DNA of 12,505 nucleotides, from the NCBI GenBank assembly GCA_002794465.1, contig MTSL01000173.1, positions 1 through 12,505 on the forward strand. The letters are read 5' to 3'. This DNA is from Paramicrosporidium saccamoebae KSL3 (lineage: Eukaryota > Fungi > Cryptomycota). A program made the position numbers and the translations under genes. Position 1 is the first letter of the stretch, and each line of letters begins with the position of its first letter. This document shows positions 1-12,505 of this stretch, piece by piece. Under the pieces are notes generated by a model. That model was not told where the DNA came from. It did not search any database and worked only from the letters and a program-made list of their open reading frames with translations.

Positions 1-2132
1 GGCATCGCCAGCCGCCACAAAGGAACAAGCAACAAGAACGATCAACGACGACGTGAGACTGGATGCCTCTATTACAAAGTCTACCTATCTCGGGCAAAGG
101 AGACAGCATTCCGGCAACTCCAATCGCGATACAACTGATAAGGATGTCGTTGTGACAGAGACAGTGGCCCGTGTGGAGCAATTGCAAATCGAGACTCGTC
201 TACCTGAACAAAAGCCGGTGGAGCCAGTTACCCAAGCCACTCAATGCGTTGAGTCTTCTGCGGCCACAATTTCTAGTACTGACCTTGAGGCCCCAACCAG
301 TGAAATCAAAATGAATGGAAGCGACAGTCAACTAGATAAGCTGAGACAGTCTACAAGTCATCCTGCCCCAGTTCTTGCAACAAAAAGTTCTCACAAAAAC
401 TTGACTGCCCAGGCTCCGACCGCTTTGCGATGCGAACTGCAAGGCCAAATTCAAAAGGTCATTGTTACTTCAGGCATTGATGGGAAATTATCACTTTTAA
501 ATGATTTGGCCAAGAGATGGGGCGCTCGTGCTATTATCCACACTGGAAACTTTGGATTCTACGGTACTTTACAGATTGCATAGTCACTAATTGTCAGATG
601 ACGAGAGTCCAAGCCGCATAGATGCAAACAATCTGAGATTTGTTGCAAGCAGAGAAATTGGCCAAGAAAAGGCCAATTCCCTTTCTGACGAGGAGGTAAA
701 AAGCTTGGTTACCACACAAGGCTTGCTGTCAGAGTTTCCGGATTTCGTCAGTGGAGTTAAACGCTTGGATGTTCCCGTGTACGTTGTATGGGGACAATAT
801 GAAGACTTTGCCGTGATTGAAAAATTAAAGAGGGGTGTGTATCATGTACCGAACCTGTACATTTTGGACCATCGCAATTCGTTTGCCATTTCTAGTGGAT
901 CAACCACGCTTCGTCTATTTGGTTTAGGCGGATCTTTCAGCTACCCGAAGCTCTTTGACGTCGGTCTGGGTAATGATTCTGTCTCTGGAGGAGATGGTAA
1001 AATGTGGGCCACTTTGGTCCAATTGGGAGAACTTTTAGATCTGGCCGAAAAGTATGAGGACCTCAACGAGGTGCGTGTGTTTATCAGCCAAGTCAATCCC
1101 AGTAAGGAGCCGCTTGCCCATTTCGTTGCTACTGCAATTAGAGCCGAGTATAGTGTTAGTACTGGAGACACCACCATCTGCTCCATCTTTAATGATCGCG
1201 CGATACATACAGTACAGACATTGAATGCCTTTATGAAGCCAACGAAGGAGGATATTAAATCCATGTGGGACCAGATCTACTTTGCCTGCAATGAAAAGTT
1301 TACCAATGTTCAACGCAAAAGCTGCCAAAAGTTCATCTCGTGCATTGAAAAGTCGTATATTACTGAAGAAATTTTGCACCGATGCACCCATATCAATATG
1401 TGTTCGATTCAATACGGAGAGGCCAAGTTGTGTCTATCCAAGGAAAAAATATCGATTGAAAGTGGGCACGTTCGGGATACGCTCAATGTGTTTGCTGGTG
1501 GTTCGCTCAAGTTAGCCTCGAATACACTTGCTGGTAGTTCCTCCAAGTTAGCCTCCGATGCACCTTTTAGTAATACCTGCAAGTCAACATCGGACATATT
1601 TGTCGGAGGGTCCTCAAAGTCCGTCTCTGATGCTCTAGCTAGTGACTCTTCAAAGTCGACCTCGGATGTTCTCGTCAATAATTCCCCAAAGTCAATGTCT
1701 GATGTGCCTGCTGGTGATTCATCCAAGCTAGCACCTGATTTGCCCGTCAATGGCTCCTCCAGCCCAGCTTCCTCAACGAACCCCTCTGGGGAAAACTTGA
1801 CTTCATCGGTTGATCCCCTATTCTCTGCACTCCCCTCCGCCACCAGTCGTCCTGAAGAGTCTTCGTCGTTTTATATGGATCGTCGTGGATCATCTAATCC
1901 CGACCTTTCTTGCATCCTCAAAAATCTTCCTCGTGACATTAGCGGCGCTGAGCTGGATGAGGAATGTTTGAGCAAATACGACATTGAGTCGATTAATTTC
2001 CGGTCTCCCCGTAATGAAGTTGCATTGGTTACATTTAAGAGTGTGGAGGAGAGGAACCGTGCCATGTCTGAATTGACTGACACTATGGTTAGAGGACGCA
2101 CGATATTTGTTGCCATTCCTCACGCCCGTTGA
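1..2132 (+). CDS. DUF2433-type fungal protein: degenerate calcineurin-like metallophosphoesterase region plus C-terminal RRM (5'-partial; exons <1-563 and 598-2132)
   Basis: The frame of ORF 53..583 is open back to base 2 (ASPAATKEQ...), so the true start is upstream of the window. Removing a 34-nt intron joins IIHTGNFGFY to DDES, matching the HTGDFGFYDD block I recall from fungal DUF2433/RRM proteins. Downstream blocks LDVPVYVVWGQYED, LRLFGLGG and GKMWATLVQLGEL follow the same family. The C-terminal ILKNLP...ALVTFKSVEERNRAMSELTDTMVRGRTIFV is RRM-like. The family call is from memory, not a search. Confidence 0.8.
564..597 (+). other. Spliceosomal intron, 34 nt
   Basis: GTACTT donor, CACTAAT branch-like motif at 585-591, CAG acceptor. 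Removal fuses ORFs 53..583 and 591..2132 in frame and restores GFY-DD. Confidence 0.9.
1488..1775 (+). repeat. In-frame degenerate tandem repeat, 8 x 36 nt (12 aa)
   Basis: Units: VFAGGSLKLASN / TLAGSSSKLASD / APFSNTCKSTSD / IFVGGSSKSVSD / ALASDSSKSTSD / VLVNNSPKSMSD / VPAGDSSKLAPD / LPVNGSSSPASS. Lys is at position 8 in seven of eight units, and the DNA period is visible (aag...gat). Confidence 0.85.
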
Positions 2133-2313
2133 GTACTTGTTACTATTCCTCGCGTTTGCTAAATAATCTTTATGCCATTCGTGAATAAACAACTAAATAT
2201 TCTACAAATCGACACCACTAGTACACAACGATGACAGCGCAACCAAAACGCAGAAATGATAACACAACTCAAATACCAACACTGGTTCTATTGAAAGTAA
2301 TCTACAAAACTAC

Positions 2314-3297
2314 CTAAGCCCGATGCAGTAGCTCCATGGGATCGGTATAATCCGTACGCACTTCGGCCGCACTTCGCTGCAGTTCAAACGTATTCATTAG
2401 CATTCCTGATGTGCTCATCTCTGGACAGATGAAATCAATGGACATGGTCATATTTGCCATGTTTGTCATTGAAACGCTCATTTGGTTGCTTGGACTTGAT
2501 GCCCTGAACACTTGCTCCACGTGCAATGAATTCACTGCCCCATTGACCGCAGGATCGTTGACCCGTGGCATCTGGTATGCGTTCCATTGGAACAACGGAT
2601 ACTCCTCCGAGGGCGGCTCTGGATCGGCGGGCCAATCGCAGATGCTTGGAGCAATCGGCTCCACAGAAATGGACTCCATTAGACGTTCTTTGCGTCGACG
2701 ACGTCGGCCAGAACTACTTGAACTGGAGCCGAGCTTGCGTCGTTTAAAGGCGCCGTCCTTGAAGGCAGCCAGTTCCTCCTCGTTGACCGTCCAATAGGAA
2801 CCCTTTCCCGTGTCCTTGTCGGATTTCTGCAGTTTCACAAAACAACTGTTTAGACTGAGATTGTGACGGATCGAGTTCTGCCAGCCACTGTTTTCGCTGC
2901 GGTAATAAGGATATTTGTCCATGATCCAGGAGTAGATTTGATTCAATGTCAACCGCTTACTGTTTGTGGCCAATAAGGCCTGAGCAATTAGCGAGGCATA
3001 GCTGTAAGGCGGCTTGGCCACGTCGTAGCGACATCCCGTGTACTGTGGATGAAAGGCGTCTCGCTTAAAGCATTCCTCTTCCATTGTTGCCATCGGCACT
3101 GAACTGCTGCTCGTACTTAGTGTCCGTTTGCGATCATCTGGCTTTGGGAGGATTGTGTGCACCTTTGTTGGGCGCACGCGGTGCATCTCCTTGGACATCC
3201 GGTCCGCGTCCAGAAACAGATCCGCAGGGACACACGTTCCATCCTCCTCCATCACTGCAGCTTTCCGACCACTTGGACGGCGATTGTTCATCATCAT
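2314..3297 (-). CDS. Forkhead (winged-helix) transcription factor with no FHA domain (Hcm1/Sep1-like architecture)
   Basis: [14 protein letters not shown]...[17 protein letters not shown]...[18 protein letters not shown]...GKGSYWTV is a canonical forkhead domain. It is followed by a basic NLS-like stretch (KRRK...RRRRRKER). First in-frame ATG is at 3297 (the ORF track starts at an upstream TTG); TAG stop at 2316-2314. Confidence 0.93.
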
Positions 3298-3441
3298 GGA
3301 CAATCTGCACCACCTCCACCATCCAGATTGCCCCTTTTAGACTGCTGTCGGCGCTCAATTTACAAACACCAATAATTTCCTTATTAGGAAGTACCGTTAA
3401 TGTCGTTTGTCATTTGCCTTTTTGGGATTCTTGTTTATGGG

Positions 3442-4532
3442 CTACAATTTACTCTGCAGGCGGTTTTTGCCTTGCAATTGGCCATTACTTTGTGGTTGAT
3501 CCTTACTTTGTGATGGACCATTACTGCGCGACTGATCTTTACTCTGTGGTTGGTCTCTAACGCGAACAACGCCTTCTTGGGCGCAGCTAAGAACGAGGAC
3601 GCCATCCTTAGTATAGAGTCGACCTAGGGAGAAGCCACGGCCGGAACTGGCGCGCGGAGACTCCATTTCATACAAGAGCCATTCATCGACACGGAATGGG
3701 GCATGGAACCAGATACAATGGTCCAGTGTGGCCATAAAGGTTACTCTGGGATTCCACATGTGCAGTCCCGATGGCCTAAGAGAAGTGCTCAACAACAGAT
3801 GATCTGTGGCATATGCTGCAATACACTAACCTTAGCGCAAAAGAGAGACATACTTGATGTAGACCTGTATCGTCGGGAAGGACGTGTCCAACACGAATCC
3901 AAAAGGACTGTCTTGGTGACGCTGGCTGTGCCTCTTTGATTGTCTGCACATCAATGGGCTCGGTAAACCGAATCTCCAAATCAAATGGCTCAAATATGTG
4001 GAATCTAATGGCGTTTCCAATGTCCGGAGTGACCTGTGGATCCGCCAGAATGCCTTGTACGAGCTCCTCGCGGGTGGGAAAGGACTCTGGAGATGGTGTG
4101 GATGGCATTTTGTATTGATGGTCGAGCGAAGATTGCTCGGGAGTGTGGAAGGAGACTTCGCAGACGAATATATTTCTGCCCTTTTGGATCGCATGCACTG
4201 TTCTTGTGCAATAGGCCTTACCTGCAAATCACCTAGCAAACATTTCATGTACCATCTCGGACACGATTCACGCGGTAAAGGATGGGATGGTCGGGGTTTC
4301 CGGGAAGCAAAAAGTATGAATGCAGGGAGTGGACTGTGAATTGCTCAGGAACCGTGCGAGTGGCGGCCATCAGACTCTGGCCTACCACCTGTCCGCCAAA
4401 GACCCCCCGCGCTCCGCTGGGACGCCATAAACTCCTGCTTCTGTACAGGTCGACATCCAGCTCTACAAAATTATGACAAAATTAATCCCGACCATCTAAT
4501 AACACGGCCGTCTCAATTAATGCCTTGGACAT
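3442..4532 (-). CDS. TES1: Acyl-CoA thioesterase II (TesB/Tes1/ACOT8 family), peroxisomal, 333 aa; exons 4532-4493, 4462-4253, 4221-3854, 3825-3442
   Basis: The spliced product reads MSKALIETAVLLDELDVDLYRS...GVFGGQVVGQSLMAA...VHSLHSYFLLPG...VRDGKAYCTRTVHAIQKG...LHQCIAAYATDHLLL...MATLDHCIWFH...WLLYEMESPRASSGRGF...SCAQEGVVR, all TesB-family blocks. Exon lengths 40+210+368+384 = 1002 nt keep the frame. The protein ends in the PTS1 tripeptide SKL. Confidence 0.92.
3451..3558 (-). repeat. In-frame degenerate tandem repeat, 6 x 18 nt (6 aa), directly before the terminal KL
   Basis: RDQPQS / KDQSRS / NGPSQS / KDQPQS / NGQLQG / KNRLQS, then KL-stop. Five of the six units end in the codon AGT. Confidence 0.8.
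3826..3853 (-). other. Spliceosomal intron, 28 nt
   Basis: Minus strand GTATGT...GCTAAGGTTAG. Removal restores LHQ-CIAAYATDH and removes the frameshift between ORFs 3776..4198 and 3442..3795. Confidence 0.92.
4222..4252 (-). other. Spliceosomal intron, 31 nt
   Basis: Minus strand GTACAT...GGTGATTTGCAG. Removal restores VRDG-KAYCTRTVHA. Confidence 0.9.
4463..4492 (-). other. Spliceosomal intron, 30 nt
   Basis: Minus strand GTCGGGATTAATTTTGTCATAATTTTGTAG, with an in-frame TAA. Removal gives LLD-E-LDVDLYRS. The donor and branch site are weak. Confidence 0.75.
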
Positions 4533-4560
4533 GTGAAACGAAAAATTCGTTTATTCTTTT

Positions 4561-6306
4561 ATGATGGGTTTGGACAGCGGCGTCACACCCGAAACTGCCA
4601 AAGTGCTGGTGGTTGGTGCAGGTGGTATTGGGTGCGAGTTGTTAAAAAACCTCGTGTTGGGCGGATTTCGTAACATACACGTGGTAGGGGTGTGTATTAA
4701 TTTTTGAAATGTTTAGGTTGATTTGGATGTTATTGAACTGAGCAACTTGAACCGACAGTTTCTCTTCCGTCGGCAGCATATCGGCCAAGCCAAGGCCAAA
4801 GTAGCCGCTGAAGCTGTAAAATCCATGGTTCCTGATGCCAACATTACGCCATATTGGGCCAACATAAAGGACACTACCCAGTTCCCCTTTTCATTCTTCC
4901 GTACCTTTGATGTTGTGCTGAATGCACTGGATAACCTCGATGCACGTCGCTATGTGAATAATATGTGTCTGAGTGCCAGTGTGCCGTTGGTAGAGAGCGG
5001 CACTTCAGGCTATCTTGGCCAGTGCAGTGTCATCTTGCCTTGCGATAGCGAGTGCTTTGATTGTACCCCGAAAGAGAAGCCCAAAACCTTTCCGGTTTGT
5101 ACCATCCGGACCACACCCTCTTCGCTTGTCCATTGTATAGTTTGGGCAAAGGAATATTTAATGACGAATTTGTTGGGTCCACCGACCGAAGATGCTTTGC
5201 CAGAGGATGAGGCGTTGTTGGAATCTCTAAAAAGGGAAACTGAGGCATTTGTGGCCATCCGTGATATGGGACATGCCAACAGTGTCCTCTACAGTAGGAA
5301 AGTATTTAGCAAAGTCTTTTTCGATGATATTACCTCGCTCGTATCCTTGACAGAGCTATGGGAGAATCGGGACCCTCCCACTCCGCTTAGTATTGATTTT
5401 GATTCAGTTGAAGAATTTGATATGCGCCAAGCGGATGATCATCAAATCTGGACCCTTTCATCTTGGATTGCAGTGTTCAGATCGAGCATTGAAATCCTGT
5501 GTAAACGTGCATTCGCCAACAACAGTTTCACCGAAATCTACTTTGACAAGGATGATGAGGATGTTATGAGCTTTGTCGCAGCTGCAGCCAACATTCGTGC
5601 GCATATATTTGGAATCCCCTTGGCTAGCCACTTTTCACTCAAATCGATGGCTGGAAATATCATCCCGGCGATTGCAACAACTAACGCAATTGTCGCCGGA
5701 ATGATTGTGTTGCAAGCTTTAAACATTTTAAACAGAGAAAAGGCCAGATGCGTGACCGCCTTTTTGACGTACGGTGTCCGTAGAGGGACTTTGTTTGCAT
5801 GCGAGCGTTACCTGCCTCCAAACCAAGATTGCGCCACTTGTCAAGTGGATCGGGCGATTGCGTCTTTGGACCCCACCAAGACGACCCTGGGCCTGTTCTT
5901 GGATTCTATAACCGACGCATATAATAGCATTCGTGGTGTAAATATTGCCAAAAGAGAGTGCACTGTACTAGAAGGCACGCGTATGCTATATGACGAAGAT
6001 TTTGCCGACAATGCAGAAAGGCTTCTGAGCGAACTTGACTGTGGAGATTCCCGGTTCATCAGGGTTGATTTCTGGGACGCCAATGTGCCATTACTTGTCG
6101 TTATTGACAAATCTGACAAGGTCCAATTTTCATTTACCTCCGAACGACAAAATCGTAAGCGAAAGCATATGGCCGAGGACATAGGTAAGGATACAAACGA
6201 CGATCTGAGCAAGGAGGTGAACGACGACATAGATGAAGATATTACTCAGCCGCCAACAAAAATGGCACGATTGTTGATAGCCGATGAAGATGTTGTTGTA
6301 GTTTAG
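4561..6306 (+). CDS. UBA2: SUMO-activating enzyme E1 catalytic subunit (Uba2/SAE2), 570 aa; exons 4561-4683 and 4717-6306
   Basis: [18 protein letters not shown] nucleotide-binding loop, [37 protein letters not shown], Zn-binding CFDC and CATC, catalytic [29 protein letters not shown]. The C-terminus has NLS-like RNRKRK and SIM-like EDVVVV. Confidence 0.95.
4684..4716 (+). other. Spliceosomal intron, 33 nt
   Basis: GTAGGG...GTTTAG, with an in-frame TGA. Removal joins RNIHV to [15 protein letters not shown]. Confidence 0.9.
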
Positions 6307-6361
6307 CAGTTTATAAATCATAGTCATGACAGAATCTATGCAAATGGTTTATTCTTACGAC

Positions 6362-7756
6362 TTATTTTGGTAAAGCCTCGACTTTTTTCTCAACTCCCCT
6401 CTCAGCTTCGGCCTCATCCTTGCATTTGGTCTCCTCAACTGCGGCAGGTGAAGCAGCCTTTTCTGCTGTTCCGAGTTCCTTTTCCAAATCGTTTATGTAT
6501 GTCTCTTGTTCTTTAATCAAATCCTCCATGAGTTGCAGTTCCCGCTCCGCCATGGCAATAATCTCGTCCTCTTCGCCGGGCGCCGGCATTGTCACTCCCT
6601 CCGGTAGTGATACTCCGACAGCGGCAGCGGCGATCCGCGACTCTGCAGTCTCGTTGGCCTCCCGTAGTTTTGTTTTGAGATTGTCAATTTCCTCATCACG
6701 ACTGATCAGAGTGTCCTGAAGTTTGGCAATTTCTCCGCGTTCCTCCTCCAAAGTCGCAGGATCCCTTTCGCCAGTGTTGGCAGTGGCAAGGAGTTCAGAA
6801 TAAGCAGTCTTTTGCTCCTCTAGCTCCTTCTTGACACTTTCCAATTCCTTTTTGACAGTCTCATGCTCCTCTTGAAGCTCCTCTAGATCCTCCTCTTTTC
6901 CCAAAAGACCACCAATGTACTCGGCCATGGCCCTAACATCGGGATCCTGGTCAGAGACGAGTTTTCGACAAAGGGCATCATAATTATCTGCCCTCTCAGT
7001 GGCCTCTTCAAGTTTCTCCTTTAGTGTAGAAGCCTCGGCCTGCAGCAATTCCAGCGCAGCATCATCCACAACCGCCGGTGTAGGTATAGGCGCGGGTGAT
7101 GGAGGCTTTGAAATTTTATCAGGAGATGATGAGTCTGCAGCAGCATCAGGAGTCTTGGACACGGCATCAGGAGTCTTTAACACGGCATCAGGAATCTTGG
7201 ACACAGCTTCGGGAGACTTGGGCGCGGGCTCAGGAGACTTTGACACGGGTCCAGAAGATTGAGATAGGAGTGCAGGAGACTTGGTCTCGGGCTCAGGGGT
7301 GGAATCAACAGGCATAGCCACGGGCGTCGTTTCTTGGGGAGGAACTGCAGCCGCCGGCTTCTCTTCCGTCTCCTCGCTAATTGGGGGAGGGTTGGGAGCA
7401 ACTCCGGGAATACCACCCATCGCACCCATCATCTGAGACAGCATTGTTGGATCCATATCGGCGCCGGTGGCACGAGCACGGGCAGCACGCTTTCGCCGCG
7501 GCTTTCGTCCTCCACTGATCACTTCGTCCTCCTCATCGGCAAGGTTGATCGAGGAAGGTGGGACGTCACTTTTACGGGAAACCTCCTCCCCATCTGTCGC
7601 CGATTTCGCCCCTACTGTGGCACCCATAAAGGTTTCCGGGGCTCTATCTATTGGCGTTCTGCTCGCCCGGCTGCGACGGGGGACAGTGTTGGGATCATCC
7701 AGTCCTGACTTTTGCAAGCGCGACTTTAATGAACTTAGTGCATCATTATCCGCCAT
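6362..7756 (-). CDS. Hypothetical protein, 464 aa: disordered basic and Pro-rich N-half, acidic coiled-coil C-half
   Basis: Long ATG-initiated ORF with protein-like composition. Heptad-like segments include LQAEASTLKEKLEEA, LEELQEEHETVKKELESVKKELEEQK and IAKLQDTLISRDEEIDNLKTKLREA. I recognise no family motif. Confidence 0.8.
   Translation of the reverse strand: MADNDALSSLKSRLQKSGLDDPNTVPRRSRASRTPIDRAPETFMGATVGAKSATDGEEVSRKSDVPPSSINLADEEDEVISGGRKPRRKRAARARATGADMDPTMLSQMMGAMGGIPGVAPNPPPISEETEEKPAAAVPPQETTPVAMPVDSTPEPETKSPALLSQSSGPVSKSPEPAPKSPEAVSKIPDAVLKTPDAVSKTPDAAADSSSPDKISKPPSPAPIPTPAVVDDAALELLQAEASTLKEKLEEATERADNYDALCRKLVSDQDPDVRAMAEYIGGLLGKEEDLEELQEEHETVKKELESVKKELEEQKTAYSELLATANTGERDPATLEEERGEIAKLQDTLISRDEEIDNLKTKLREANETAESRIAAAAVGVSLPEGVTMPAPGEEDEIIAMAERELQLMEDLIKEQETYINDLEKELGTAEKAASPAAVEETKCKDEAEAERGVEKKVEALPK
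7141..7245 (-). repeat. In-frame tandem repeat, 5 x 21 nt (7 aa)
   Basis: + strand units: cagcatcaggagtcttggaca / cggcatcaggagtctttaaca / cggcatcaggaatcttggaca / cagcttcgggagacttgggcg / cgggctcaggagactttgaca. They encode SKSPEPA PKSPEAV SKIPDAV LKTPDAV SKTPDAA on the minus strand. Confidence 0.88.
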
Positions 7757-7806
7757 TGTGTGGGAATGCGTTGTCGCTCAGGTTATGGGCAATAGTCTTT
7801 GGATGC

Positions 7807-7870
7807 TGATTGGTCCAGAGAGCATTGTTTAGTCCTGCTGGTCTAAACAATGTTCGCCGTTGGCCAATCA
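7807..7870. repeat. Compound inverted repeat (64-nt hairpin potential)
   Basis: CATTGTTTAG (7823-7832) is the exact reverse complement of CTAAACAATG (7843-7852). TGATTGGTC (7807-7815) pairs with GGCCAATCA (7862-7870) with one G-T wobble. Confidence 0.8.
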
Positions 7871-8446
7871 TTGTTTGTGTAGGCTGTGAGTCTTCCATTG
7901 GTCGCAATATCGTGCATTTCCTTCAATAAGAATAATGGGATGGTTATGTCGCGTAGTGGGGATAATACCACGGACTTTGTCAAGCGGGAAGAGAACCCGC
8001 CCATTTTTAATCTCCCAAGTTGCCTAGTAATGATCCTCAAATGGTAAGATATAGGTTTCATTATCTTTCATCGATTTTTCTGATTATCCCTTCTGCAAAC
8101 TAGGGATCTATTTCCAAAAGACATGCTAATCAGTCTTCTACGTCACAGTTATATCATGAAAGCTAAATTATGAATCGGAAATCAAGGGTTTTGATGAGTG
8201 GTAAACCAACTTGCTAATTTTAATGATGAATAACTCCCCCATTGGCCATCACAATCAGATGTTGGGATCTTTCCTCTAAACTATGGACGAAAGTAAATAA
8301 AAGAAGCTCTCATTTGGCGCGTACGATAGAAGATTCTTGCACACTAGTTGTTGTAATGCCACAAAACAGGTCCCTCAGTAATTATAAACGCCTAGATAAC
8401 ATATATACAGCCCCTTAATCTAGAACCTTTACATGTCTAATGATCA

Positions 8447-8601
8447 TGCCCACTGGTATCCATTACAAAGCTCCCGTGGATCATTGATATCTGTTACCAA
8501 ACTCCCACGGATCATTGGTATCTATTACAAAGCTCCCACGGATCATTGGTATTTATTACAAAACTCCTACGGATCATTGGTATCTATTAAAAAACTCCCA
8601 T
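8447..8601. repeat. Minisatellite, 5 x 31 bp, no spacers
   Basis: Consensus GGATCATTGGTATCTATTACAAA(G/A)CTCCCAC. GGATC recurs at 8478, 8509, 8540 and 8571, with a more degenerate first unit at 8447-8477. Confidence 0.95.
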
Positions 8602-8651
8602 GGTTCCAAATCCTTCAGTCTTTATCCCCAGACCTCATTGCAGGGGTCGCT

Positions 8652-9122
8652 ATGGAGCAGGAACGCTATGAGATTACTGTGGATGCCGATGACGTCATGG
8701 ATTCACAACCAACAGAGGAACCGTCGACAACACGGCTAAGGTCAGCCGTGACAAAACGAAAGGGACGTGGATTCTCCTCGGCTGCCGACTCTTCCGGTCT
8801 CTCCGCAGTCACCCATTTCGACACACTTTACGAATCCTCAGGTCGTGCATTACGCTCTATTGAGGGCTGGGTGCTCTTTGTCACCGGGCTACACGAGGAG
8901 GTCACTGAGGAAGACTTATACGACCGGTTTGCAGACTATGGGACAGTGAGGGAATTAAAGATGGATTTGGATCACAGGACGGGGTATGTAAAGGGATATG
9001 CCTTGGTGGAGTATCTCGAATATGCTCAGGCCAAGGAGGCGCTAGAGGCACTCAATGGGTCGTCGTTTATGGATGGAATTTTGAATGTTGATTTTGCATT
9101 CAGCAAGCCGCCCACCCAATAA
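8652..9122 (+). CDS. RBM8A: RNA-binding protein Y14/RBM8A (exon junction complex core), about 156 aa
   Basis: KRKGRGF motif, then RSIEGWVLFVTGLHEEVTEEDLYDRFADYGTVRELKMDLDHRTGYVKGYALVEY, the Y14 RRM signature. I chose the start at ATG 8652; the ORF-track extension from 8433 only translates the minisatellite. Confidence 0.92.
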   Translation: MEQERYEITVDADDVMDSQPTEEPSTTRLRSAVTKRKGRGFSSAADSSGLSAVTHFDTLYESSGRALRSIEGWVLFVTGLHEEVTEEDLYDRFADYGTVRELKMDLDHRTGYVKGYALVEYLEYAQAKEALEALNGSSFMDGILNVDFAFSKPPTQ

Positions 9123-9173
9123 TAAACTTGTCCATGGAAACAGCCCTGATGGGCCGGGATGTCTTGTTCATAA

Positions 9174-10607
9174 ATGCCCACACATGCAGTGCCAGAAAAT
9201 ATAAATATCGGACTTTTGGGACACGTTGATGCTGGAAAGACCACGCTAGCCCGGTTGTTGAGCACTCATGCTTCAACGGCCTGCTTCGACAAGAGTCCGC
9301 AAAGTCAATCCCGCGGCATAACTCTTGACCTCGGCTTTTCTTCCCTCTCCATCTCCTCCCGTCAATTCACCCTCGTCGATTGTCCTGGCCATGCAACACT
9401 CCTCCGCACTGTGCTATGCGCCTCGGCAATCATCGATGCGGTTGTTCTGGTGGTGGGACCAGAGGGCATTCAAACACAGACAGCAGAGTGCCTAGTACTG
9501 GCAGAATGTACTACCGAGAGACTGCTAGTTGCGTTAACCAAGATGGATTTATTCACAGAGCCAGACCGGAGCAAAAAGATCGAGGAGCTGAAGACGAAGA
9601 TTGGGAAAGTCTTGGCAGCGACAAAATTCAAAGAGGTTCAGGTTATCCCAGTGTCGCCCTACATTGAGGATACAAAGGAACAGTTCCTTGTGGCCTTGGA
9701 TCGGCTTGTTCCAGGCTCGCCGCTTCGGGATCCAAGCGGCACTGCACTTGTAGCTGTTGATCATTGTTTCACCGTAAAAGGACACGGCCCCGTAATGACC
9801 GGTACGGTTCTACAAGGAACTATCTCAATCGGAGACAAATTGGAAATCTGTAGCCTTCAAACAACTTGTAAAATCAAAACGATCCAAAGCTACAAGCGCT
9901 CCATGAATTCTGCCATGCAGGGAGATCGTGTCGGATTGGGAGTTACTGGGCTTGTCTCTGTGGATGGAATTGAAAGAACTCTTCTCTCCATCCCCGGGCA
10001 TCAGAGACCAATTGACTCGTTCGTAATGACTGCCAGACCGATCAAATATTACAAGCACCCTCTAATTTCAGGGGTCAAACTACATGTTTCCGTCTTGCAC
10101 CAGACTACGACCGGCACACTGACATTCTACAGAGCTTCGGGTGAAGAGGGGGAATTTATAAATACCATAGAAGATTGTAGTTCTGATGTGAAAGTGCTGG
10201 TTCAATTGACGATGCGGGTCATCGCGCCTCCTGGATCGGCCGTCTTGGTGTCCAAGCTTGATGACGATCCCAAAGCGAAGAGCTGCAGATTAGCCCTCTA
10301 CGGACATGTAACCGGCATGGGTGAGCCGAAGATATTTCGGTGGAAATACAAACGTGGCATGGTTCAACGTGTGGTTGATGACCGTCGTCTTATTGGATAT
10401 GGCCTTTGCCCAACGTCGGCCGGGCTGCAGCGATTCCTGGGTATGGAATGCCATATTCTGGCCCAAGACGGATCGTATATTTCCACTGGACGGATCCAGT
10501 CCCCATTTGGAACTACAGGGAAATTCAACATTAGTTTAGACCATCCCTCCAGGGCTGGTGACTATTCCAACTCTATTGTAGAGCTCCGAATAAAGACTTT
10601 TATCTAG
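9174..10607 (+). CDS. EEFSEC: Selenocysteine-specific translation elongation factor, eukaryotic type (eEFSec), 477 aa, no intron detected
   Basis: NINIGLLGHVDAGKTTLARLLSTHASTACFDKSPQSQSRGITLDLGFS, TLVDCPGHATLLR, QTQTAECL, VDHCFTVKG..VMTGT, QGDRVG, CRLALYG, KYKRGMVQRVVDD and IQSPFGTTGKFNI align by eye, in order, to animal eEFSec domains 1-4. STAxFDKxPQS..RGITLDLGFS is not found in EF1A, eIF2-gamma or Hbs1. Confidence 0.93.
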   Translation: MPTHAVPENINIGLLGHVDAGKTTLARLLSTHASTACFDKSPQSQSRGITLDLGFSSLSISSRQFTLVDCPGHATLLRTVLCASAIIDAVVLVVGPEGIQTQTAECLVLAECTTERLLVALTKMDLFTEPDRSKKIEELKTKIGKVLAATKFKEVQVIPVSPYIEDTKEQFLVALDRLVPGSPLRDPSGTALVAVDHCFTVKGHGPVMTGTVLQGTISIGDKLEICSLQTTCKIKTIQSYKRSMNSAMQGDRVGLGVTGLVSVDGIERTLLSIPGHQRPIDSFVMTARPIKYYKHPLISGVKLHVSVLHQTTTGTLTFYRASGEEGEFINTIEDCSSDVKVLVQLTMRVIAPPGSAVLVSKLDDDPKAKSCRLALYGHVTGMGEPKIFRWKYKRGMVQRVVDDRRLIGYGLCPTSAGLQRFLGMECHILAQDGSYISTGRIQSPFGTTGKFNISLDHPSRAGDYSNSIVELRIKTFI

Positions 10608-10748
10608 TAATACTGTCGTGTATTGGGACATGAACAAACTCTCACGCCAACGGCCGAAAATGGATAAACTCTCTCATGCCTAACTATACGACTACAATAC
10701 ATATACCAGACGATGCTAATTCTAAACAACATCTTTAACAATAATTTA

Positions 10749-11241
10749 CTACTTGGCCTGCTTGTTACGGAAATCCTTCACGGCCGACTTGATCGCATCC
10801 TCGGCCAGCATGGAGCAGTGCAGCTTGACGGGCGGCAGACAGAGTTCTTGGGCGATATCCGTATTCCTGATAGCGGTTGCTTCGTCCAACGACCGTCCTT
10901 TGATCCACTCCGTCGCCAGACTCGACGAGGCAATTGCCGACCCGCATCCAAACGTCTTGAACCGCACATCCTCAATGATACCGGCGGGACTGACTTTGAT
11001 TTGCAGCTTCATGACGTCGCCGCAAGCCGGCGCGCCCACAAGACCCGTGCCGACAGTGGGGTCGTTTTTATCTAGAGAGCCCACATTTCGAGGGCGTTCA
11101 TAGTGTTCGAGAACCTAGCGTTAGTATGCACACATTTAGTACCTTCTGGTGGTATGTGCGCAATGTCAAACACGGCAAGGCGGTGGAGGAGCGAGAAAAT
11201 ACGCTGCCCGAGAGCACCAGTCGCCTGCTTATAGGAAGCAT
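10749..11241 (-). CDS. ISU1: Mitochondrial Fe-S cluster scaffold Isu1/IscU, 154 aa; exons 11241-11143 and 11114-10749
   Basis: The spliced product has an Arg/Ser/Leu-rich acid-free presequence (MLPISRRLVLSGSVFSRSSTALPCLTLRTY), then HQKVLEHYERPRNVGS, GAPACGDVMKLQI, KTFGCGSAIASSS and the Hsp70-binding LPPVK motif followed by LHCSMLAEDAIK. Confidence 0.96.
11115..11142 (-). other. Spliceosomal intron, 28 nt, canonical branch point
   Basis: Minus strand GTACTAAATGTGTGCATACTAACGCTAG, containing a perfect TACTAAC. Removal gives YHQK-VLEHYERPRNVG. Confidence 0.95.
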
Positions 11242-11256
11242 CTAGAGTCTATTCTC

Positions 11257-11283
11257 AGCCAATCATATCCCGGCTTATATAAA
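11257..11283 (-). promoter_or_regulatory. Candidate ISU1 core promoter elements (CCAAT box and TATA-like element)
   Basis: AGCCAATCA at 11257-11265 and a TATATAA-containing tract at about 11275-11283, both within 45 nt of the ISU1 ATG. This is a motif match only. Confidence 0.3.
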
Positions 11284-11549
11284 AGAAAGAGAGCAAGGTA
11301 ACCCCACCAATTCAATCAAATAAAATGCACTTTTTTATGCGCATCCCATGGATTTAGGATAAAGGGTCGGTTAATAAGCGGTAGGGGGAAAGTTTTTACT
11401 AAATTACATGGTGCGTTTATAGGCCGCCGTCCTCAGTATGATTGATAATCCAATCATAGCGGATACATTTTAGCAGAATCTCTGCTTCCAACTTTGCAGG
11501 AATCAACCGACTACACGTTTATTTTTGAGTATTCAAGGAGCATGTCAAT

Positions 11550-12505
11550 TTATAGTTCCATTTTCCGACATTCACGCACCGCAGCTAGCACATCGATTCG
11601 TCCGTGTCCAAAGTAATTATTAGGTACAGAGGTCGGCGAGTTCCCGCCACACAATGGTGCAGCATCTACTGGAGGGAGTAACTTTACAGCAGTCATCTCT
11701 AGCAAGGATTGGATCTTATCTACGTTGCCGGACAGACTAGGGCACATTGAAATGATGAGTGCCGTTGCTCCACCCACATGAGGACTGGCCATCGATGTAC
11801 CAGAGAGAGACCGGAACCCATTGCCCGGGTAGGCAGCCATTACGTTAACGCCCGGAGCAGTGAGATCCGGCTTGCAATATTTCTCTGTCCCAATGACACA
11901 GGGCCCACGAGATGAAAAGGGAGCCAATGTGTCGTCACTATCAGTAGCTCCGACGGTAATCACCGACTTTTCCAAAGCCGGCGGATCAGCAATAGTGCTA
12001 CAATCGGGTCCCTCATTACCCGCACTCACAGACATGAACACTCCGGCTGCACGAAGCGCCTCTACAGCAGCCGTCATGGCTCTTTTGCTACAACCCTCCG
12101 GGTCAGGACAGCCATAAGAGTTACCCACAACATGTGGACGCAATTTGGGGTCGGCATTCTTGCCGTCAAGATCGTGGGGAGCAAGGAAAAAGTTGAGACA
12201 ACTCAAATAAGTTTCGGGCGAGCCAACTCCACGATCCATATTGCGACACGCCATCCAACGTGCTTCAGGCGCCACTCCATAACCATCGGCTCCAACAGCA
12301 ATGCTGGCCACGTGTGTACCATGTCCTTGGTCGTCACAAGGCGCATCGGACGCAAAACCGCATTTGGCACGGCCATCAGCGGCAAACAGTTCTCGAACCC
12401 CATCCCACCACGCCTTGTTGTGGTCATAGCTTCCATCTTTCTTGAGTCCAATATAGTTGTTCTTAATGTTGGGATGTTCAAATTCAACTCCCGTATCAGC
12501 AATGG
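11550..12505 (-). CDS. Subtilisin-family (S8) serine protease, bacillopeptidase-F-like (5'-partial)
   Basis: The frame is open from 12503. It contains the full catalytic triad: IADTG (Asp codon 12497-12495), DQGHGTHVAS (His 12323-12321) and GTSMASPHVGG (Ser 11795-11793), plus the oxyanion SAGNEG. Subfamily-like blocks are GVAPEARWMACR, FFLAPHDLDGKNADPKLRPHVVGNSYG and PNNYFGHGRIDVLAAV. Confidence 0.92.
   Translation of the reverse strand, partial: IADTGVEFEHPNIKNNYIGLKKDGSYDHNKAWWDGVRELFAADGRAKCGFASDAPCDDQGHGTHVASIAVGADGYGVAPEARWMACRNMDRGVGSPETYLSCLNFFLAPHDLDGKNADPKLRPHVVGNSYGCPDPEGCSKRAMTAAVEALRAAGVFMSVSAGNEGPDCSTIADPPALEKSVITVGATDSDDTLAPFSSRGPCVIGTEKYCKPDLTAPGVNVMAAYPGNGFRSLSGTSMASPHVGGATALIISMCPSLSGNVDKIQSLLEMTAVKLLPPVDAAPLCGGNSPTSVPNNYFGHGRIDVLAAVRECRKMEL

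Follow-up and report, generated by a model that had tools for sequence, protein, structure and literature searches.

Fungi have long been believed to lack selenocysteine (Sec). Does Paramicrosporidium saccamoebae, which NCBI taxonomy places in Rozellomycota, decode UGA as Sec? The question is raised by a gene for the eukaryotic Sec-specific elongation factor (eEFSec) on contig MTSL01000173.1 of assembly GCA_002794465.1. The window analyzed here is that entire contig, 12,505 bp long and 1 of 221 scaffolds. An earlier sequence-only reading of the window had proposed a Rozellomycota-like host, which was correct, and the persistence of UGA-to-Sec recoding in another deep fungal branch. That proposal stands in part, as the gene is intact, constrained, syntenic, and located in a Rozellomycota host, but a search across the window and ~57 kb of syntenic loci found no tRNA-Sec, Sec insertion sequence (SECIS), or selenoprotein gene. 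We put at roughly three in four the probability that the eEFSec is native, functional, and vertically inherited, and that UGA is still read as Sec in the parasite and its uncultured relatives. The accession MTSL00000000 is the P. saccamoebae KSL3 genome (Quandt et al. 2017), which comprises 7.3 Mb and 3750 genes at 46.9% GC, with a gene space of 76%, and the organism is a parasite living inside amoeba nuclei.

An orthodox four-domain eEFSec

The gene is one uninterrupted open reading frame (ORF), running from ATG to TAG with zero internal stops and encoding 477 amino acids (aa) (Table 1). Curated Pfam cutoffs were exceeded for domains 1, 3, and 4, with euk_SelB_III scoring 41.5 bits and eEFSec_4th 39.8 bits, each against a cutoff of 27; the match of the second domain to GTP_EFTU_D2, at 28 bits, fell slightly under its cutoff of 30.3. 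The GTPase motifs are G1 GHVDAGKT (residues 16 to 23), G2 RGITLD (47 to 52), G3 DCPGH (69 to 73), and G4 TKMD (122 to 125). The top sequence match in PDB was human eEFSec (7zjw_E and 5izk; E value of ~2e-87), followed by archaeal SelB (8e-57) and EF-Tu (~7e-32). An AlphaFold2 model built on a 31-sequence alignment had a mean predicted local distance difference test score (pLDDT) of 86.4 and a predicted template modeling (TM) score of 0.81, and its second and third domains were all-beta, with a pLDDT of ~90, and superposed on 5izk/7zjw. The best Foldseek matches to the model were human eEFSec, ribosome-bound rabbit eEFSec (TM score, 0.81), and archaeal SelB (TM score, 0.83), all of them full-length alignments of ~480 to 530 columns, whereas EF-Tu structures aligned over ~420 columns only, with TM scores of ~0.6. 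The feature is a real, orthodox four-domain member of the eEFSec family, and the ORF, Pfam, PDB, and structural matches bear out the earlier description of a complete, uninterrupted protein.

The PGH, VDHCF, and GDR motifs that had been singled out as lining the Sec pocket were found as stated, with PGH at residues 71 to 73 within G3, VDHCF at 195 to 199, and GDR at 250 to 252. The HMMER alignment places H73, D196/H197, and R252 opposite H116, D249/H250, and R305 of the PDB chain, which are human H96, D229/H230, and R285 when the 20-residue tag is subtracted from the chain numbering. Human D229, H230, and R285 are the residues to which the Sec-pocket role is reportedly assigned, and their equivalents are invariant in 31 of 31 eEFSec sequences. 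Also unchanged across that alignment are the catalytic H73, K123 and D125 of G4, the domain-4 residues R399, F445, G446, and K450, and C371/R372, which lie just upstream of domain 4, within domain 3.

Among known systems, human/mammalian eEFSec (EEFSEC; PDB 5IZK/5IZL/5IZM and ribosome-bound 7ZJW) has the same four-domain chalice over a full-length superposition (TM scores, 0.77 to 0.81), and it shares with the window protein the G1 to G3 motifs, the catalytic His, and the conserved residues of the Sec pocket and of domain 4. Identity to the human protein is 32 to 33% over the Foldseek structural alignment, and identity to animal eEFSecs is ~38 to 40% by BLASTP. Human eEFSec is longer, at 596 aa. 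A domain-1 loop (PDB chain residues 79 to 106) and ~40 aa of domain 3 (chain 375 to 424, the gap falling between query residues 322 and 334 and chain residues 374 and 425) are absent from the Paramicrosporidium protein, and only 22 residues follow its last aligned position, compared with 64 in the human protein. The human G4 and P-loop read NKID and GHIDSGKT. Archaeal SelB (Methanococcus maripaludis; PDB 4AC9) is similar in length (~470 to 480 aa), has the same four-domain fold (TM scores, 0.74 to 0.83), and has no long insertions, but at 25 to 27% identity, and with the weaker E value given above, it is farther away than eukaryotic eEFSec; the window protein matches the eukaryote-specific Pfam models euk_SelB_III and eEFSec_4th. 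The eEFSecs of two early-diverging fungi, Hyaloraphidium curvatum and Synchytrium microbalum, have the family and domain set in common with the window protein at 37 to 39% identity, but are longer (553 and 608 aa). The pattern shared with Sec-using early-diverging fungi is that of an ancestral opisthokont trait persisting patchily in non-Dikarya fungi.

A conserved locus under purifying selection

The same locus recurs in uncultured relatives of P. saccamoebae. In tblastn searches, all ten window ORFs queried were collinear with a 121-kb Joint Genome Institute (JGI) metagenome contig (L003), in the same order and orientation and at 34 to 88% amino acid identity; these ORFs comprise the first gene, a forkhead gene, two thioesterase exons, UBA2, a coiled-coil protein gene, RBM8A, eEFSec, ISU1, and a subtilase gene. 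An independent Logan contig (L004) has the same locus, and the eEFSec homolog of the two contigs (P0003) is 49% identical to the window protein. Adjacency of RBM8A and eEFSec, of eEFSec and ISU1, or of both was also found in L002 (82% eEFSec identity), L008 (47%), L007 (46%), L006 (42%), and L010 (38%). In L006, the thioesterase and UBA2 genes also lie upstream of eEFSec, and the downstream order in L010 (ISU1, subtilase, DEAD helicase, Med6, and 2OG oxygenase) matches that of L003. Six uncultured lineages in all, spanning 38 to 82% eEFSec identity, keep the gene beside RBM8A and/or ISU1. The 121-kb and 99-kb metagenome and Logan contigs derive from JGI 3300037657, SRR11844784, and SRR21707646. 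No such synteny was seen for homolog P0014, which has an animal-type context beside a claudin gene.

The gene is also constrained. In comparison with its 82%-identical homolog in L002, nonsynonymous divergence (dN) was 0.10 and synonymous divergence (dS) was 0.90, giving a dN/dS of 0.116, and the ratio lay between 0.09 and 0.19 in each of the four domains. The eEFSec is under purifying selection. Its divergence from the L003 homolog falls inside the range of its housekeeping neighbors, and the simplest reading of these comparisons is that the gene has probably resided for a long time in the Paramicrosporidium lineage.

The clade defined by these loci has signatures of its own. Its G4 motif is [T/S]KxD in the window and in L002, L003, L006 to L008, and L010, whereas the other sampled eEFSecs have NKxD, with the exception of P0081 (TKSD). 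Its P-loop is GHVDAGKT, with Val in P0004 and Ser in P0008, and all other sampled eEFSecs have Ser. Within G4 the Lys and Asp are invariant, and the change of Asn to Thr or Ser is clade-wide. G1, G2, G3, the G4 Lys and Asp, the Sec pocket, and the invariant residues of domain 4 are retained in all clade members.

Probable selenocysteine decoding and its alternatives

Retained Sec decoding is the most likely reading because the eEFSec is under purifying selection and its synteny is clade-wide. By homology with the animal system, the GTP form of the protein would bind Sec-tRNA(Sec), with the selenocysteinyl group seated in the domain-2 pocket that D196, H197, and R252 form. Together with SBP2 bound to a SECIS element in the 3' untranslated region, eEFSec would bring Sec-tRNA(Sec) to ribosomes at an in-frame UGA, and GTP hydrolysis mediated by His73 would then release the factor. 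This activity (binding of GTP and Sec-tRNA(Sec), and decoding of UGA with SBP2 and SECIS) is what the retained motifs would predict, and genes for tRNA-Sec, for the other Sec machinery, and for selenoproteins would be expected elsewhere in the P. saccamoebae genome. The step from a constrained eEFSec to Sec decoding is taken because lineages that lose selenoproteins (insects, plants, and most fungi) reportedly lose eEFSec too.

With somewhat less confidence, yet still as the likelier outcome, we extend this reading to the whole, mostly uncultured clade of Paramicrosporidium-related Rozellomycota (seven lineages, P. saccamoebae and the six others). The clade would have kept UGA-to-Sec recoding through genome reduction, using a streamlined eEFSec of archaeal SelB size that has Ala in the P-loop and a [T/S]KxD G4, and it would possess a selenoproteome that has never been described, the genes of which would be missing or truncated in the annotation of GCA_002794465.1.

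Several observations weigh against the favored reading of a functional, vertically inherited factor that serves Sec decoding. The check for tRNA-Sec together with SECIS or TGA-containing genes, which covered the window and the ~57 kb of syntenic loci (L002, L003, L005 to L008, and L010), found none: Rfam (E value of ≤1) and ARAGORN returned no tRNA-Sec or SECIS, and a Seblastian-like scan of the window against the seven syntenic loci returned no frame conserved through an in-frame TGA. A thinly sampled neighbor-joining (NJ) tree did not recover a fungal eEFSec group, a grouping of the clade with the two named chytrids having 0% bootstrap. The G4 of the window protein is TKMD (nucleotides 9537 to 9548). 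Human eEFSec exceeds the window protein by 119 aa, having the domain-1 loop, a fuller domain 3, and a longer C-terminal tail. Neither the genome paper nor its five supplements (Quandt et al. 2017) mention selenium.

The failure to see a second Sec component is weak negative evidence, because the searched sequence covers <0.2% of the genome (12.5 kb of 7.3 Mb). Two sub-threshold Rfam matches, to Guanidine-II and the L31 leader, were set aside as chance matches. All 113 raw TGA read-through matches shadowed known genes, either off-frame or in antisense, and masking left two trivial ones; the single match outside the called gene models (TGA at 4347) was a shadow of the unannotated N-terminal exon of the thioesterase gene. 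A eukaryote-type tRNA-Sec pattern was also scanned across metagenomes and matched at least 120 loci; tblastn tied none of the 120 listed to the clade. The pattern itself works, since ARAGORN called tRNA-SeC at 98 of the 120 loci listed. The three JGI samples with clade members contributed none of the 80 metagenome contigs listed by name with the pattern. On one pattern-bearing metagenome contig (L012), a distant SelB/eEFSec-like ORF (4636 to 5478; 25 to 29% identity) lies ~4 kb from the tRNA-Sec (9541 to 9612), and it is unrelated to the Paramicrosporidium clade.

With respect to the sequence changes, TKxD motifs at G4 are present in active GTPases such as Rac1, and we read the clade variant as probably tolerated rather than as decay for that reason. 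The shortening brings the Paramicrosporidium protein to the size of archaeal SelB.

An unlikely explanation, although the best placed of the alternatives, is that the eEFSec is an orphan or has been repurposed and is selected for another role, such as delivery of a different aminoacyl-tRNA or a nontranslational GTPase function, the rest of the Sec pathway and the selenoproteins having been lost. The heavily reduced genome, the altered P-loop (Ser to Ala) and G4 (Asn to Thr or Ser), the shortened protein, and the lack of any other Sec component in the sequence searched would all fit such a history. A factor freed from Sec-tRNA(Sec), however, is hard to square with a Sec pocket and domain-4 residues kept in every clade member, with constraint of the same order in every domain, the eEFSec-specific domain 4 included, or with the joint loss of eEFSec and selenoproteins in the lineages named above. 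A phylogenomic study also points away from it, stating that only four fungal phyla do not encode Sec, and Rozellomycota is not one of the four (Amses et al. 2022, PNAS).

We consider it improbable, to a clearly greater degree, that an ancestor of the clade acquired the eEFSec, and perhaps the whole Sec trait, horizontally from a nonfungal eukaryote such as the host amoeba or an animal. The parasite inhabits amoeba nuclei. Most of the named best matches to the protein are from animals (38 to 40% identity), and in the NJ tree the clade stands apart from the two chytrid sequences. The same tree, however, offers no close donor: it joins the syntenic-locus eEFSecs in a clade of their own (bootstrap, 0.93 to 0.95) that is nested in no sampled group, and its Kimura distances to animals and to Hyaloraphidium/Synchytrium are equal, at ~1.0 to 1.1. 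No amoebozoan appeared among the best 120 matches in the eEFSec search. The proposed tree check gave neither nesting within a donor group nor a grouping with chytrids. The order of the housekeeping block is kept down to 38% eEFSec identity, and the divergence of the gene from its L003 homolog (49%) lies within the 34 to 88% of its neighbors. The eEFSec lies in a conserved old block and has diverged like its neighbors, and therefore any transfer would predate the whole clade.

That the contig is an assembly artefact, either a chimera or contaminating DNA of the Saccamoeba host or of some other eukaryote in the metagenome, is very improbable: the contig is short, Amoebozoa include Sec users, and the assembly was binned by tetranucleotide emergent self-organizing map (ESOM) out of a 72-Mb metagenome from an infected Saccamoeba culture, but the named matches among the best 120 to its UBA2 protein (PSACC_02703 [Paramicrosporidium saccamoebae]) are all fungal (Basidiobolus, Umbelopsis, Mortierella, Coemansia, chytrids, and others), with no amoebozoan, its GC content of ~0.48, its gene density, and a 33-nucleotide (nt) intron fit the published compact genome, and its ten-ORF order recurs in independent assemblies from other samples, which excludes a chimeric contig. 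The eEFSec is native to P. saccamoebae, and the contig is neither chimera nor contaminant; to the sequence-only reading, too, it had not looked like a contaminant fragment.

Gene models, published record, and significance

The coordinates of the eEFSec gene, its domains, and its immediate surroundings are collected in Table 1.

Table 1. Features of the eEFSec locus, in window coordinates
Feature	Position	Strand	Basis
Syntenic block, ten window ORFs queried (eight to nine genes)	591..12505	.	tblastn against L003, gene tables
RBM8A/Y14-type RRM gene, upstream neighbor of eEFSec	8652..9122	+	Pfam RRM_1; adjacency in L002, L003, L005-L008
51-bp spacer, RBM8A stop to eEFSec ATG	9123..9173	+	Coordinates
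eEFSec coding sequence, single exon, 477 codons + TAG	9174..10607	+	ORF list, Pfam, PDB match, AlphaFold2/Foldseek match to 5izl/5izk/7zjw_E, dN/dS 0.12 against L002
Domain 1, EF-Tu-type GTPase, aa 9-180	9198..9713	+	Pfam GTP_EFTU, 98 bits
Domain 2 beta-barrel, aa ~186-283, Sec-pocket D196/H197 (VDHCF) and R252 (GDR)	9729..10022	+	Human alignment, invariant columns, sub-cutoff Pfam match
Domain 3, aa 284-385, eukaryotic SelB third domain, ~40 aa shorter than human	10023..10328	+	Pfam euk_SelB_III; alignment gap
Domain 4, aa 386-477, eEFSec-specific C-terminal RIFT domain, shortened C-terminal tail	10329..10604	+	Pfam eEFSec_4th, invariant columns, pLDDT 84-94
ISU1 (NifU_N) 3' exon, convergent downstream neighbor	10749..11084	-	Pfam NifU_N, 148 bits; adjacency in L003, L005, L007, L010

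Pfam supported the description of the neighbors as ordinary eukaryotic housekeeping genes, identifying forkhead, acyl-CoA thioesterase, UBA2, RBM8A-type RNA recognition motif (RRM), ISU1, and subtilase genes. The spacer upstream of eEFSec would hold its promoter and 5' leader. On the downstream side, the stop codons of eEFSec and ISU1 are 141 bp apart, and ISU1 is 88% identical to its L003 ortholog. A DUF2433-type gene, which the sequence-only reading had also listed, was not confirmed: neither the first gene nor its full-length L003 ortholog matched DUF2433 in Pfam even at an E value of ≤0.1, and the RRM was the sole significant domain. This first gene (window 1 to 2132, + strand; L003 1303 to 3171) is 52% conserved, with the RRM at its C terminus and a GNFGFY… segment resembling metallophosphoesterase.

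Several deposited or called gene models can be corrected. The UBA2 model (559 aa) skips ten conserved residues found in all relatives (4654 to 4716, + strand); a 33-nt GT..AG intron at 4684 to 4716, in place of the 63 nt of the model, restores them and yields 569 aa. Introns in the window are as short as this one, in agreement with the tiny introns first noticed there. In the RBM8A-type gene, a 31-bp tandem repeat (4.7 copies, 85% match, 8454 to 8600) lies inside the annotated N terminus (8433 to 8651), its translation being a repeated HWYLLQNS.GSLVSI.KLP peptide. By tblastn, homology to L003 begins only at residue 77, which makes the Met at 8652 the probable true start and would place the repeat in 5' leader or intergenic DNA. 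The acyl-CoA thioesterase model (3454 to 4108, 200 aa) is truncated, because an N-terminal hotdog-domain exon (…RGVFGGQVVGQSLMAATRTV…HSLHSYFLLPG…) lies outside and upstream of it at ~4270 to 4480 (- strand). At 10749 to 12503 (- strand), the gene caller gives a single 429-aa product in which ISU1 (NifU_N) is fused to the subtilase (Peptidase_S8); the two are separate genes in L003, L005, and L010, and the 5' exon of ISU1 (…EHYERPRNV|GSLDKND…) lies directly upstream of 11084. Coding in-frame tandem repeats were seen in the coiled-coil protein (7143 to 7248; 21 bp, 5 copies, PDAVSKT-like), in the first gene (1508 to 1584; 36 bp, 2.1 copies), and at the thioesterase C terminus (3483 to 3552; 18 bp, 3.9 copies, SKDQ.QSNG).

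A 2019 study reportedly found Sec in nine early-branching fungal species, said to belong to Chytridiomycota, Zoopagomycota, and Mucoromycota and thus not to Rozellomycota; nine is also the total given in a 2023 review. The phylogenomic study describes a hidden Markov model search of 137 taxa, for which the P. saccamoebae genome is cited and to which a new Rozellomycota genome from a single cell belongs, with 11 genomes being Sec positive, and a phylogeny in which Rozellomycota is the first branch from the root (Amses et al. 2022). Taken at its word, the statement on phyla implies that a Rozellomycota genome has already been scored as Sec positive, so that a phylum-level claim is probably in print, as one figure track, which counts against novelty. 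The proposal that Sec in Rozellomycota was unreported is weakened to that extent. At the species level, our literature search found no explicit account of the Sec machinery or selenoproteome of P. saccamoebae, and the study by Amses et al. was the sole relevant paper found on Paramicrosporidium, Rozellomycota, Cryptomycota, or Rozella together with Sec.

The gain is incremental, given that the phylum-level statement has apparently already been published. What is added here is an eEFSec that is native, under purifying selection, and fixed in its neighborhood in P. saccamoebae and its six uncultured relatives, as well as the G1 and G4 variants of the clade. The Paramicrosporidium protein is in effect a naturally minimized eEFSec, useful for structure-function work. 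Misannotation of TGA-containing genes is probable both in the P. saccamoebae assembly and in related metagenome bins. If the clade has indeed kept recoding, no fungal genome known to encode Sec would be more reduced than its own, and its Sec machinery would be minimal for a eukaryote. The constraint on eEFSec in Rozellomycota speaks for Sec decoding as an ancestral fungal trait with many later losses, and suggests that the trait is able to survive in a 7.3-Mb obligate intranuclear parasite.

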